Assembly: GCA_965649765.1 (NCBI GenBank)
Contig: OZ287759.1
Coordinates: 8,184,001-8,248,000 of the forward strand
Direction of reading: 5' to 3'
DNA from: Bispira polyomma
Lineage: Eukaryota
DNA length: 64,000 nucleotides
The position numbers and the translations under genes are program-made. The notes beneath the pieces were generated by a model. It searched no databases. It was not told the DNA's origin and saw only the letters and a program-made list of their open reading frames with translations. Shown here piece by piece: positions 16,776 to 62,236 of this stretch. Numbering within the stretch: the first letter of the stretch is position 1; every line of letters begins with the position of its first letter.

Positions 16776-17200
16776 AAAATAGACATGAATTTTTTTAAAC
16801 GGGAAACCAAATATTTTATCTCATAATTAAGGCTCACTTTATGTGTCACCAGGATTATTACACAGAAACTATTGAACCTCAATTGGTTGAAAGCTTAGGA
16901 TCAGGAGCAAGGAATATATTTATTGAAGTTTGGAACAACGCCAGAACAAAAAGGCGCAAATCTGGGATTTTTTTGACAATGTAGCACTTTGGCGGAGGAA
17001 TGAATGTCTGTCTAGTTACAAATGAGCTTTAATGGTAAAACAATTATTCCATATTAAGACTTTAACTTTATATATTACCCTACAAGTTATAAAAAGGGTC
17101 AATAATAGTTTGTAGTGAAATACGAATATATACACACTATGCATTCTGTAAATGTTTGAGTCAAACAAAAAATCCATCAAAAACAAACAGGCGAATCGGA

Positions 17201-17692
17201 GACGAAACCCTTACGGCATGAAACCCCTAGCTGGATAAAACGTTTACCAGATGAAATCCCATCTAGATATAACCCCTACTGGATAAAACATCTACCAGAT
17301 GAAACCCCTTGTGGATGAAACCCCTACTGGATAAAACATCTACCAGATGAAACCCCTTGTGGATGAAACCCCTACTGGATAAAACATCTACCAGATAAAC
17401 CCTCTACTGGATGAAACCTCTGCCAGATAAAACTCCTACTGGATGAAACCCCTACCAGATATAACCCTTACCATATTATTCCCTACTGCTGCCAGATAAA
17501 AGTCCTACTTAATGAAATCCCTACCAGATAAAATCCTTACTGGATGAAACGCCTACTGAATGAAACCTTTACCAGATAAAATCCCTACTAGATAAAATTC
17601 CCATCAGATAAAACTCCTACTGGATGAAACCTCTACCAGATGAAACTCCTAATGGATGATATTCCTGCAGGAAAAAACGCTGCCAGACGAAA
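17201..17692. repeat. 16-bp minisatellite (~30 units) with a local 48-bp higher-order repeat
   Basis: Units GATGAAACCCCTACTG / GATAAAACATCTACCA / GATGAAACCCCTTGTG; the triplet is repeated exactly within 17282-17393. Confidence 0.9.
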
Positions 17693-21204: not shown

Positions 21205-22924
21205 GTGAAGTAATAAAATAAACCTATCTGTTACATATCTAAACCCACCAGTATTAAAACACAATTTTATTTTCGCTGTGACTGTGAAACCGACAACGGT
21301 AGCGCAAAGTACGTCTTTCGGATGCCGTTGTCGGTAGCGCAAATCATCAGTTTAGGCTACCGTTCATCATTTAAGACACATTTTATTGAGTTTATATTGA
21401 TACATTTAATAAGTTTTGATAAAAAATACACAATTAAATTATACAAAAGATACATCAAACTGCATAAAACTTATCAAAAAGGATCTGTGTTCACATGAGA
21501 GATAACTGACTTCATTATTGTAGCCGCCTATTTACACAGATAATAAAGAACATGAAAAAATTAGTTGTGAGAAACCCATTCATTGGAGCCTGGTATTTTA
21601 AATAAATGGAGAGTCTGTATGGTAGTGGCCAACGTCTTTTATTTTGTAATTTATACCCCCTACATTTAGCACCACCTATTTAAAATATCAATATATCCAA
21701 ATATACACACAGGCGCCCTGATATGCTAATATATCGTTTAATCAATAACTATATTACACAATATTGTACCTTCACTAAACTGACAACCATTTACGCTCCA
21801 TCAGCCAATCACACAAACACGCACTCATTTACCCTTCCAATATTCACGTCACGCCCTCCGCGTCAGAATGACGTAATACATCGACCCAAGCGAAAACTGG
21901 GGAGGCGACCAAACAAATTGGAAACCAATTAGAACAACCAAAGGTTGTAAACAGTAAAGACTAACGCTAATAACATACGTCCTTTTATACCTTAATAGGC
22001 TGGCGTCCTATTTTCTACGTGGACTTTTTTTTCTGTTTTGAGTAAAATAAGCTTTATCAATGTTATTTATTTCATGGTAAAAACTGTATCAACTGATATT
22101 TATGTCATATGCTGGAATATCAAAAATTTAGAAACATTTTGTGTACATGTTATAATTGCAATTTTTAACATATATTATAGACTCTGTAAAGATACTATTT
22201 AAATTAAGACACCCGCCTCCTCACAAAACTGACTCCTCTAAAACAAATGAAGCCATAATATGTTTCCCCGGGGCGACAATCGTTAGACACACGTGACTTT
22301 TTCACACATCCCAGATTACCGGATGAAAGGGCGTAAATAAATGATGACCAGTTACTTTCTCTCTTTAAAAAAAAAACACAAACCACCCTAATGACCAGTG
22401 TTGTCTGGCCACAAATAGGAGTGAAAGGGTAATTACTGACGAGATGAATGGCTTTTAAATGGACCAATTTTTTTTCACTGTGTGTGGGACGTTCTCGTCC
22501 GTTACAAGTTTAAGCCAGGGCCCCTCAAGTTGGTATAATTTGCCGTGCTCAATAAGAGGAAAATTTGATCACACTTTGGAAAAAGTTAATTGTCTTTGTG
22601 TGTGAGTGTGGAGGAGAGGGAGGTGGGGGGAGCTGGTAGAGGGGGTAGTTATGTGTTGTGTCTGTTGGGGTGTGGGATGGAAGTCAAGATGCTATTTACA
22701 ACTATAAACCCCTGTTATCTGAACATATTATGGGAAAGAGAGCAAAAAATTGTTTGTTCAGATAATAAAAAAATGGTGTCTTCTCATTGAAATAGAAAGG
22801 GTAGGCATTTGTGTAGAGAACAAATAAGACAATATATATCTTTGACAGAGTGGTGGTAATATAAATTCATAAACTTGAAGTACTGTTTTGAGTGAGAAAT
22901 TTTATCCAGAAATTTGGCTTAAGT

Positions 22925-26350: not shown

Positions 26351-26659
26351 AAGAATTTTTGTGTCATCTTAACAAACGTATACATCCTTCTGAGTTCGCC
26401 TCTAGTTCAAATAATAATAGTAATAAAGATGTTGGAAGTAGTGTTATATCAGAAATATTAAATTTGTGCAAAAAGAATATTTTTTTCACAAAAACCTCGG
26501 AGAAGCGATCATGTGATTAATATATTCAAGAAACAAATGTTGTTATTAATGTTGTCCAGAATCAAAAATATTTTTTTGTAAATGCCGGAAATTAATATTA
26601 CATTGGATACACAGCTATTGGTTGCTTCACAGGATATCGAGGAACATTCAACAAATGAA

Positions 26660-54379: not shown

Positions 54380-54525
54380 ATAACCACGTGTCCCATCTGG
54401 AGCAGACGAGTGATGAGGAGTTGAACCGTCTACTGGGTATTGTGGTTGATGTGGAGAGTATGTTTATCTGTGTCAGACAAGAGGAGGACGGAGACACCAA
54501 ACAGGTCTACTTCTACCTCTTCAAG
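54380..54525 (+). CDS. KAT2A: KAT2 exon 3
   Basis: HVSHLEQTSDEELNRLLGIVVDVESMFICVRQEEDGDTKQVYFYLFK; CAG acceptor, AAG|GTCAGT donor, phases 1 to 0. Confidence 0.95.
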
Positions 54526-54584
54526 GTCAGTAGTTCGAACCACTTCAAGGTCAATAGTTTAAACCTCTTCAAGGTCAGTAGTTT
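54516..54584 (+). repeat. 24-bp tandem triplication spanning the exon 3 donor
   Basis: CTTCAAG|GTCARTAGTT occurs three times, with GT at 54526, 54550 and 54574. Confidence 0.9.
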
Positions 54585-56523: not shown

Positions 56524-56554
56524 GTGAGTACAGTTTCCTAGTGGAGGACTTTCA

Positions 56555-56941
56555 CAACTTAAGTTGAGGAATAACTTCCATAACTCAGTTGAGAAATAAC
56601 TTCCATAACTTTTATAATTTAAGTTGAGGAATAACTTCCATAACTTAGTTGAGGAATAACTTCCATAACTTGGTTGAGGAATAACTTCTATAACGTGGTT
56701 GAGGAATAACTTCCATAACTTAGGTGAGGAATAACTTCCATAACTTGGTTGAGGAATAACTTCTATAACTTAAGCTGTGGAAAAATTTCTATAACTTAAG
56801 TTGCAGAATAACTTCTGTAACTTAAGTTGAGGAATAACTTCCTTAACTTAGTTGAGGAATAACTTCCATAACTCAGTTGAGGAATAACTTCCATAACTTG
56901 GTTAGGGAATAAATTCCATAACTTGGTTAAGGAATAACTTC
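56555..56941. repeat. 25-26 bp minisatellite (~15 units) at the start of KAT2 intron 5
   Basis: Unit GTTGAGGAATAACTTCCATAACTT(A/G). Confidence 0.92.
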
Positions 56942-57708: not shown

Positions 57709-57900
57709 GTGGCTCTGTTATTGTCACGTGCCGGCAAATTGTGACAGTTTGCCTAAGTACGAGACAACAGTCATCTTTGGGCGGACACTTCTTAAGTCCG
57801 TGTTTCACACGATGAGGAAACAGTTATTGGACAAGTTTAGGGCTGAGAAGGACAAGATGCCGCCGGACAAGCAAACATTGGTGCTGACTGATTTCCCCAG
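57709..57900 (+). CDS. KAT2A: KAT2 exon 6
   Basis: WLCYCHVPANCDSLPKYETTVIFGRTLLKSVFHTMRKQLLDKFRAEKDKMPPDKQTLVLTDFP; phase 2/2. Confidence 0.96.
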
Positions 57901-58107: not shown

Positions 58108-58658
58108 TGCAGCTAAACTACAGTTTACTTAAACTTGTGTTATTTAGTGATTGACATTTTAAAAACTCTGACTGATTCTCATGTATCATCACATTAGTGA
58201 ACAACCAATAAATCTGGTGACAACAAGAACTCTCTAGAATTAGTGAGGACAGCCTCACAAAAATTAGAGCTAAAATCAGCAGCTCTTCCTATTGCAGGCG
58301 AACCCCTTAAGCTAGAACTCTGTTAAGTTGAGCAAGGAAAGTCTTTTTGTTGTAAGTTTATTCTTTTTAATGCTTAAAATAATGCTAGTAGATAAATTTA
58401 TCCTAGAGAAACTCCTAACAAACACTAAAATGTGAGTTTAAAGAGTCTGGAATATGAAATAATAATAAAGAGTTTAAAAATTGTCTCCAAGTTAAATGGC
58501 TTGATGTCAACTGTTGATTTTTTCCTGTAATCTATGGCAAATCTGCTTTAGTTGCTGATAATTGAGAAGAAACTTGTATTGGAGGAATTTGTAGAGAAAT
58601 TTAATAATAATTATTAAAGACATGTTAGTCCAACTCTAAAATTTGATATTTTGGTCAG

Positions 58659-58774
58659 GTTTCTTGAGATGCTTGAAGAAGATATTTATAATGACGACTC
58701 TCCAATTTGGGATCCAAATTTCCAGCATCCACCGACATCATTACACATACCAAACTCCAGTGGTAGTGGCCCTG
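58659..58774 (+). CDS. KAT2A: KAT2 exon 7 (end of PCAF_N domain)
   Basis: FLEMLEEDIYNDDSPIWDPNF matches PCAF FLSMLEEEVYSQNSPIWD; CTG|GTAAGT donor, phases 2 to 1. Confidence 0.93.
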
Positions 58775-59345
58775 GTAAGTTTTAATTCCCCACTAGTGCC
58801 GTAGGTGAGTTTTAATCCTCCATCAGTGCCCTAGGTAAGTTTAAACCCTGCACCAGTGCTCCAGGTAAGTTTTAATTCCCCACTAGTGCCCTAGGTAAGT
58901 TTTAATCCCCCATTAGTGTCCCAGGTAAGTTTTAAACCCTGCACCAGTGCCCTAGGTGAGTTTTAATCCCCCATCAGTGCCCCAGGTAAGTTTAAACCCT
59001 GCACCAGTGCCCTAGGTGAGTTTCAATCCCCCATCAGTGCCCTAGGTAAGTTTAAACCCTGCAATAGTGCCCTAGGTAAGTTTTAACCCTGCACTAGTGC
59101 CCCAGGTAAGTTTTAACCCTGTACCAGTGTTCTAGGTGAGTTTTAATTCCCATCAGTGCCCCAGGAAAGTGTAAACCCTGCACCAGTACCCTAGGTAAAT
59201 TTTAAGCCTGCACCATTACCCTAAGTAAGTTTTAACCCCTAGGTAAGTTTTAACCCTGCACCAGTACCCTAGGTAAGTTTTAACCCTGCATCAGTGCCCC
59301 AGGTAAGTTTTAACCCTGCACCACTGCCCCAGTTAAGTTGTAAAC
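58765..59345 (+). repeat. 30-bp minisatellite (20 units) built from the exon 7 donor junction
   Basis: Consensus GTRAGTTTTAACCCTGCACCAGTGCCCYAG; two subtypes partly alternate, giving a 60-bp higher-order period. Confidence 0.95.
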
Positions 59346-59599
59346 CATATGTATTGCAATATATTGGATTACGATACTTTTACAAAATCTTGTATGCTCG
59401 CACCCTTTATTTCTAGAATACTAAGAATTGAGTGATATTGAAAGATTTTACCTAAAATAATATGTATCTAAAATTCGCCACCAAGACAATGGGATGCATG
59501 TATGGAAGATATAAATGTGCCCCTGGGGGGCAGTGGGGGGGGAGGGGGGTGTCACTAAAATTTTCCACTGAATGACTGTACTTCTTTACTGGTATTACT

Positions 59600-59805
59600 G
59601 ATCCCTATGTAGAATAGGAAATCTAAAATTTGCCACTGTATCTGCAATTCGCCCCCTGTTTTAGAATAGTGGGAAATATTTGGTGAAATTGAGATTTTTG
59701 TGACTATTTTGCCCTTGCTTACCTACATTCCAGTTATTTTTCGCCCGTTTTTATTGAGTTGCTTAACATTTAAGGGTGGCACATTTCAGATTCAGCTGAA
59801 TTTCC
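59600..59805. mobile_element. MITE-like repeat; second copy ~61700-61910
   Basis: Shared GGAAATCTAAAATTTGCCAC...AATTCGC and GGGTGGC...ATTT blocks with inverted ends. Confidence 0.55.
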
Positions 59806-59822
59806 CTCATTGCTTGTTTCAG

Positions 59823-59942
59823 TAAGCAGTGCCGACGAGTCCACCCCGACTAAAGAAATCCTGACGAACGGCCACACAAGTATGGCGTCCACTCCCGAGA
59901 GACCAGAAAGGGGCAGACGGAGAGTGGTAGATCCAGACAGGG
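59823..59942 (+). CDS. KAT2A: KAT2 exon 8 (low-complexity linker)
   Basis: VSSADESTPTKEILTNGHTSMASTPERPERGRRRVVDPDR; TTTCAG acceptor; 120 nt, phase 1/1, fits between exons 7 and 9. No recognisable homology, as expected for this linker. Confidence 0.78.
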
Positions 59943-60096
59943 GTATGGCTAGTGGGTTATTTATAGATTACCACAGACAGAGGTACGGATAGTGGGTTAT
60001 TTATAGATTACCACAGACAGGGGTATGGATAGTGGGTTATTTATAGATTACCACAGACAGGGGTTCGGATAGTGTGTTATTTATAGATTACCACAC
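59934..60096 (+). repeat. 40-bp tandem repeat (4 units) spanning the exon 8 donor
   Basis: CAGACAGRG|GTWYGGMTAGTGGGTTATTTATAGATTACCA, with GT at 59943, 59983, 60023 and 60063. Confidence 0.92.
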
Positions 60097-61039: not shown

Positions 61040-61182
61040 GTGAAAAGAGAGTAATGGAAGACAACAGCAGCCCAGCTCCAGAAGACATGAAGAAGAGGAA
61101 AATAGAGGGAGACGTTACCATGGCCACTGTTTGTGATGTCATAGAGACCATTACTGAACCAGAGAAGATGTTGGGCCCGGAA
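61040..61182 (+). CDS. KAT2A: KAT2 exon 9
   Basis: GEKRVMEDN...KKRKIEGDVTMATVCDVIETITEPEKMLGPE matches PCAF GEKRK...GDIPMELINEVMSTITDPAAMLGPE; phases 1 to 0. Confidence 0.92.
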
Positions 61183-62236
61183 GTTAGTATTGCACACTTT
61201 AAATGTTTAATTTCCTGTTAAATAATTTAGAAATTTGACATTTTTTTCTTTTTACTGATCAATGTGAGTAATCTAGGACCTGTATAATTCCAAAGCTTGT
61301 TCCAAAACCTAATTTGACTGTTGTTTTTGCATGATTATGCCAATGCTTATTGGCATAATCCTGCTTTCCTGGAGAAAGGGAGTATTGAAAGAACCTTAGT
61401 TACTCATGGTTACAACGTGTCCACAGGGTAATCTCTGAATCTGTAAGGAGTTATGCTCTTAAATTTGGTATATATACACTTTTTGGTCTCTAGTTGTTCC
61501 AAAATTAATTTGGTGTGATTATATGCAGTATAGTAGAAGTTATTTAAGTTTTAAATATTGGGATCCTCAGATTTGATTGAAGGTTCATTACAGCCCATTT
61601 CAAATGGTTTCAAAAGGAATAAAAACTATACATGACAAACATTAGGTTTGGGAAGATATATAACATATATATACATTCTTCGGTTAATGGATGGTTGTGG
61701 CTGTAAGGAATATAAAATTTGCCACCATCTGAAATTCGCAACCCAGAAAATGTTTTGTTTTGTGTAGAATTGTGGTAATTATTTGCTTAAATTAATATTT
61801 TTATGAATAGTTTGCCTTCCTTACCATTGTTTGCCAGTTTTTATTTATTTGGCTTAAATTTTAGGGGTGGCGAATTTAAGATACAGGAGCAAATTTTAGA
61901 TTTCTTACTGTATTAAGCTGAGAAAAAAATATATGGTGAACCTAATATATTGCATACAGGTTAACTGGAATATTTTAAAGGATAAAAATTACAGAAGCTA
62001 TATGTGTCACAATAGGAATAAACCATATGGGGTGAGAAATGGATGGTTTTTGATGGCAGGAAATATATTGTTTTTGTTTGGTAACAATTATAATTGAACT
62101 AAGTGTTCCAGTGTAGCGCTAAAAAAGTGTATGGGGATACAAAATATGGCCAGAGGGGCTTGCCATATTTTTGTATCCCCTTGCAAAATAATGTATCCCC
62201 TGGAAAACAAATAAATTTATTCTCTGACTATATATA

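Follow-up and report, generated by a model that had tools for sequence, protein, structure and literature searches.

The closest described counterparts of the locus analysed here are the amphioxus mirages, in which tandem copies with units of 10–160 bp lie across an exon–intron boundary (PMC3087553; PMC3902484). Cases named in these reports include Adh3, the globins BflGb6 and BflGb9 and PGBD5, and in RT-PCR the mirages leave splicing undisturbed (PMC3087553; PMC3902484). Among human VNTRs, the unit measures 37 bp in F7 intron 7 and 31 bp in CBS intron 13 (PMC1557585). In the F7 VNTR splicing is confined to the donor lying furthest upstream, with no competition from stronger pseudo-sites that have consensus values of up to 91; in F7 minigenes, perfect-consensus pseudo-donors took 70–90% of splicing from the weak native donor (PMC1557585). 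According to the comparisons drawn in the same report, two extra donors are used in CBS and 6-16, and only the true donor is used in lamin B2 and PDGF (PMC1557585). Ratchet points, the sites of recursive splicing, are conserved, isolated, found mainly in long introns and accompanied by a sawtooth RNA signal (PMC8605326).

The window, by which we mean the whole 64-kb stretch of DNA that was analysed, contains the 5′ part of a KAT2 (GCN5/PCAF) gene on the plus strand, the acetyltransferase exons of which continue past the window end. KAT2 is single-copy, the PF06466 matches in the genome being confined to this locus. Exon 6 (57709–57900) contains the end of the PCAF_N domain (PF06466). Coding exon 7 (58659–58774; 116 nt; FLEMLEED…SGSGP) ends in phase 1 and shares 89% amino-acid identity with the orthologous exon of a relative (ENA ERZ22147071, locus L059), whose KAT2 exons are 68–100% identical in protein and which is 44% divergent at four-fold sites. 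The native exon 7 donor, CTG|GTAAGT, lies at 58772–58780, and its GT at 58775 is the only one that keeps the frame open and gives the full protein. Intron 7 (58775–59822; 1,048 nt) ends in a CAG acceptor (59820–59822) preceded by a U-rich tract, with the same acceptor context in the orthologue. Exon 8 (59823–59942; 120 nt; donor GGG|GTATGG at 59943) is 68% identical in amino acids to the exon in the relative and has a like exon at locus L034, and exon 9 (61040–61182) starts with G-E-K-R. KAT2 exons were searched against other species one by one. As the source of the DNA, homologues suggest a lophotrochozoan. The exon numbering, the native donor and the position of the next exon at 59823 given by an earlier sequence-only reading of this DNA all hold, and the orthologue supports the acceptor. 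A splice straight from exon 7 to exon 9 (P-G-E-K-R) was considered and set aside, since exon 8 is conserved in two other species. Exon 8 is a fast-evolving linker exon that preserves the frame (phase 1 to 1); it is a candidate cassette exon, as the frame would stay open if it were skipped. Elsewhere in the window, a single-ORF NeuroD-like bHLH gene (PF00010, PF12533) at 28767–29933 on the minus strand is 73% identical to that of the relative, and conserved non-coding blocks at approximately 30712–30851, 32988–33080, 26650–26810 and 22238–22602 are candidate enhancers. At 17200–17680 there is a degenerate 16-nt minisatellite, repeated about 28 times and also showing periods of 32 and 48 nt.

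The donor of exon 7 lies within a minisatellite (58765–59343, plus strand) that spans the exon–intron boundary. Nineteen units can be delimited (58775–59332), 16 of them 30 nt long and one each of 31, 29 and 18 nt, with the consensus GTAAGTTTTAACCCTGCACCAGTGCCCYAG, a period of 30 and 77% matches; a 20th start at 59333 has decayed, its GT reading TT. The array of 20 tandem units that had been described as beginning at the native donor is real, as these 19 units and the decayed start. The last 10–11 nt of each unit correspond to exon-end sequence and the first 20 nt or so to the start of the intron, so that the unit spans the boundary and repeats the donor, which bears out the likeness to the donor-spanning VNTR of CBS that had been suggested. 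Fifteen junctions are perfect YAG|GTRAGT (GT at 58805 to 59303), exactly those listed before. Four are damaged, among them 59165 (GA), 59195 (A at +5) and 59225 (TAA|GT); the splice signal is therefore repeated in many, not all, units. The AG is altered in one of the 19 units. Outside the array, YAG|GTRAGT is matched only once more in the window, by the donor of exon 5 (56524). Five of the copies read CAG|GTAAGT and match U1 at 9/9 positions against 8/9 for the native donor, in agreement with the better U1 match that the sequence-only reading had noted for several copies. Its two statements about the reading frame stand as well: unit 1 contains a TAA (58783–58785) in frame with exon 7, and since this codon precedes every internal donor, the use of any of them includes the stop and truncates the protein just after PCAF_N.

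Contigs from three public DNA runs (two samples) agree letter for letter with most of the array, the segment 58961–59033 being covered partly by the listed pieces, and none of the contig joints listed for 58300–59900 falls inside the array; such contigs drop variants. Their agreement argues against an assembly slip, and the runs may come from the source sample. An origin of the array from a dispersed repeat was rejected because it has a single match in the genome (in a search that skips common words), and a protective RNA structure was rejected because shuffled versions fold just as well (z = +0.89). Behind the array, intron 7 carries a very high-copy dispersed element (59340–59810; summed contig depth >100,000; many opposite-strand joints) that looks as expected of a MITE-like inverted repeat, and related pieces occur at approximately 61860–61915 and in the KAT2 introns of the relative.

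Exon 7 is not the only exon of this gene with an amplified donor. Three of the nine KAT2 donors in the window are amplified, those of exon 3 (54515–54584, plus strand; 24 nt × 2.9; junctions AAG|GT), exon 7 and exon 8 (59934–60095, plus strand; 40 nt × 4.1; junctions GGG|GT or GAG|GT). The arrays at exons 3 and 8 lack YAG junctions, and the relative has no array at any of the three donors. A 25-nt minisatellite at 56548–56941 (13 copies, 87% matches) begins 24 nt past the exon 5 donor and excludes it.

The origin of the unit is clarified by the relative, the single species on which the orthologue comparison is based. There, exon 7 ends AGT GCA CCA G|GT (S-A-P-G) and is spliced at the same codon position, at CAG|GT. 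The commonest CAG-type unit of the array ends AGTGCCCCAG, one synonymous change away from this exon end. The native exon 7 now ends AGT GGC CCT G and differs from the copies by a synonymous CCA-to-CCT change and an Ala-to-Gly replacement; the former weakens the native donor at −2, a position at which the relative retains CCA G|GT. The YAG of the units is best read as the last proline codon plus G of an older exon end, copied together with the donor; as the 3′ end of the unit so closely resembles the exon end of the relative, it would be explained by descent. CAG|GTAAGT is the donor consensus, so that any donor-spanning duplication gives an apparent acceptor–donor pair. No array was found in the exon 7 intron of the relative, where the 700 nt next to the donor are free of GTRAG, and the best local score of the unit against that intron is 24, with shuffles at 22 ± 3. 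From this one outgroup and the array itself, the relative appears to show the ancestral state.

Similar ladders are frequent in this genome. Triple YAG|GTRAGT ladders with 27–33-nt spacing number 285 genome-wide against 79 in a reversed control, and triple RAG ladders with the same spacing 272 against 17; at 34–45 nt the figures are 894 against 81 (YAG) and 651 against 120 (RAG), all of these being counts of pattern matches, not of arrays. The first 100 YAG matches at 27–33 nt correspond to 18 separate arrays. RAG makes a poor acceptor and a normal donor. Ten other arrays were picked by eye because the frame upstream of them looked coding; six of these begin at a recognisable coding-exon end, and the preceding exons encode dynein AAA, eIF3i, a Roc domain, a bromodomain, phospholipase C and phosphorylase kinase alpha. 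Perfect junctions are at least as numerous as in the KAT2 array in five of 18 other YAG arrays. Taken together, the YAG and RAG counts and these junction numbers show the KAT2 array to be typical of its class, which is common, conforms to the donor consensus and has no acceptor-like junction preference. Two near-identical 32-nt donor arrays (L057, 3626–4375; L058, 3450–3962; counted on the minus strand of contig C4 of assembly G000) lie about 9 kb apart, the latter after a phospholipase C exon; they may have arisen when one array was copied to a second donor, or by local duplication. A 35-nt tandem unit with GAG|GTGAGT recurs at distant sites of the same assembly (C1:3553402, C1:97797938, C2:100837978, C2:107274818 and C3:1495585), and some of the pattern matches thus belong to a dispersed repeat family and not to donor-born arrays.

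It had also been suggested that substitution rates be compared between splice and non-splice columns. In the KAT2 array alone, the constancy of the core GT and AG is not significantly higher than that of the other columns (p = 0.09–0.31); seven splice columns are less variable (p = 0.01–0.04 raw, 0.02–0.11 base-matched) in an array that was picked for that look. From a sample of 33 arrays (L041–L073), 29 were entered into a conservation test in which three matching units were removed and the controls were base-matched and equally ascertained. Over this set of 29 there is no conservation of the AG (p = 0.34) and no difference between arrays of the YAG and the RAG type (p = 0.95). The apparent better retention of AG in YAG than in RAG arrays seen in a first pass vanished under phase-free alignment and ascertainment control. 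The GT and positions +4 to +6 are about 4 points less divergent than control windows, with lower values in 21 of 29 arrays (p = 0.0014) and YAG and RAG arrays alike, in a test that was post hoc and made on motif-found arrays, with ascertainment partly controlled and units within an array not independent. In this comparison the acceptor dinucleotide shows no conservation, and the donor core shows a modest degree of it. This pattern argues against acceptor function; for retention of the donor core in the copies it is a modest hint that residual ascertainment could explain.

We favour, with a probability of roughly 0.75, the reading that the array is a lineage-specific donor-spanning ‘mirage’ minisatellite that is tolerated by the gene, with the first donor used. 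A single local tandem duplication across the exon 7 donor would have been followed by expansion and partial homogenisation through slippage or unequal exchange; the true exon end would meanwhile have drifted to its present sequence. By analogy with F7, lamin B2, PDGF and amphioxus, the spliceosome would mostly take the first donor after the exon, and the intron would be removed, array included, in a single step. Now and then a downstream copy would be used, yielding a premature stop and a transcript probably cleared by NMD, the array being tolerated and not a selected device. Production of normal mRNA from the authentic site is suggested by the single-copy state of KAT2 and its intact exons. 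Some leak into stop-containing mRNA is plausible given the five copies that outmatch the native donor for U1, and these could compete as the perfect pseudo-donors of F7 did, although the native KAT2 donor, at 8/9, is much stronger than that of F7. Pure drift does not predict the lowered variation of the splice columns in this array or the modest conservation of the donor core over the 29 arrays.

If such competition were strong, the array would act as a leaky poison element: downstream donors would take a sizeable share of splicing, the resulting mRNA would be degraded and the dosage of KAT2 would change with array length or sequence, on the model of human CBS and 6-16. The five better-matching copies and the stop shared by all downstream donors are compatible with this, as are the two extra donors reported for CBS and 6-16 and the competing perfect pseudo-sites of F7 in the comparisons of that study (PMC1557585). 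We nevertheless regard it as unlikely, because the array is absent from the relative, in a manner unlike conserved poison exons, and because no length variant was seen among the DNA contigs, which drop variants; moreover, if the native −2 A was lost while the copies were already present, as the presumed order of events has it, competition is probably weak. The conserved GT and +4 to +6 columns, similar in YAG and RAG arrays and without a corresponding effect at the AG, would alternatively fit extra donors kept for U1 binding, through protection from premature cleavage or help in exon definition, or a U1-binding bias in array birth or mutation. We hold this to be quite improbable: the supporting test was post hoc and motif-ascertained with non-independent units, one early pass showed no effect in RAG arrays, and the KAT2 gene of the relative manages without an array.

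The sequence-only reading had put forward a recursive, self-correcting ladder, in which splicing to internal YAGs regenerates donors or remnants left by wrong donors are re-spliced to the normal junction. Its geometry is indeed present, in the shape of 15 exact YAG|GTRAGT junctions, a motif resembling TTAAC that lies some 19 nt before the unit ends, a pyrimidine count of 10/15, at the high end among YAG arrays, and an AG changed in just one unit. The YAG is, however, accounted for by descent from the exon end, and ladders with RAG are no rarer than those with YAG. The acceptor context is weak: the tract is C-rich and U-poor, and the 20 nt before the internal YAGs contain 3–7 T, against 9–15 in seven of eight real KAT2 acceptors. 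A second AG lies 8 nt upstream in 14 of the 15 perfect junctions, whereas seven of the eight real acceptors have no AG within 15 nt. This extra AG sits in a zone where human introns show a depletion of natural AGs (PMC9284458), although an AG near the branch point can be bypassed (PMC1431707). Conservation of the AG is likewise missing over the 29 arrays, and the 1-kb intron with its unconserved sites, absent in the relative, is unlike the setting of ratchet points (PMC8605326). Once a wrong donor had been used, re-splicing would have to proceed beneath the exon junction complex (EJC), which is reported to suppress it (PMC8184009). The supposed 60-bp higher-order period, which would have suited 60-nt steps, is not significant, and neither is a 90-nt one: identity is 0.82 at lag 2 and 0.80 at both lag 1 and lag 3 (permutation p = 0.23). 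A recursive ladder is therefore highly improbable at this locus. The wider proposition, that some YAG-type mirage arrays including that of KAT2 are removed stepwise or re-spliced in 60–90-nt steps, with wrong donors corrected and copy number setting KAT2 output, is held to be just as improbable; if true, a minisatellite in a short intron would have given rise de novo to a tandem ratchet.

Taken by itself, the KAT2 array is an ordinary case of a repeat class already described. It offers a natural test of 5′ splice-site choice, in which a weaker first donor is followed by five perfect and ten near-perfect ones. All of the copies are preceded by an in-frame stop, the gene is a chromatin gene present in single copy, and the case bears on first-donor priority outside mammals. 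At the level of the genome, the interest lies in the frequent amplification of donors in this animal and in the possible retention of the donor core.

Compared with the known systems, the array shares with ratchet points the juxtaposed YAG|GTRAGT and a following sequence that is out of frame or contains a stop; it differs from them in having 15 unconserved sites 30 nt apart, a 1-kb intron and a weak acceptor context. The premature stop recalls conserved poison splice events, unlike which the element is unconserved in the relative. The resemblance to the VNTRs of F7, CBS, 6-16, lamin B2 and PDGF is closer: in each, the first unit spans the exon–intron boundary and every unit carries a donor, and CBS, with 15–20 copies, is also similar in unit size and copy number. 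The F7 pseudo-sites are identical to the native site, whereas several of the KAT2 copies are stronger than the native KAT2 donor and all of them follow an in-frame stop; donor use has been measured in the human genes, and the KAT2 array is known from its sequence. In the amphioxus mirages we find boundary-spanning tandem units, a size range (10–160 bp) that includes that of the KAT2 unit, an AG/GT in many units, a unit identity of 77–82% and an outer unit unlike the inner ones, as in KAT2. Amphioxus is a cephalochordate in which splicing was followed by RT-PCR; the KAT2 case, known from DNA alone, places such an array in a lophotrochozoan-like animal, and there the class extends genome-wide.
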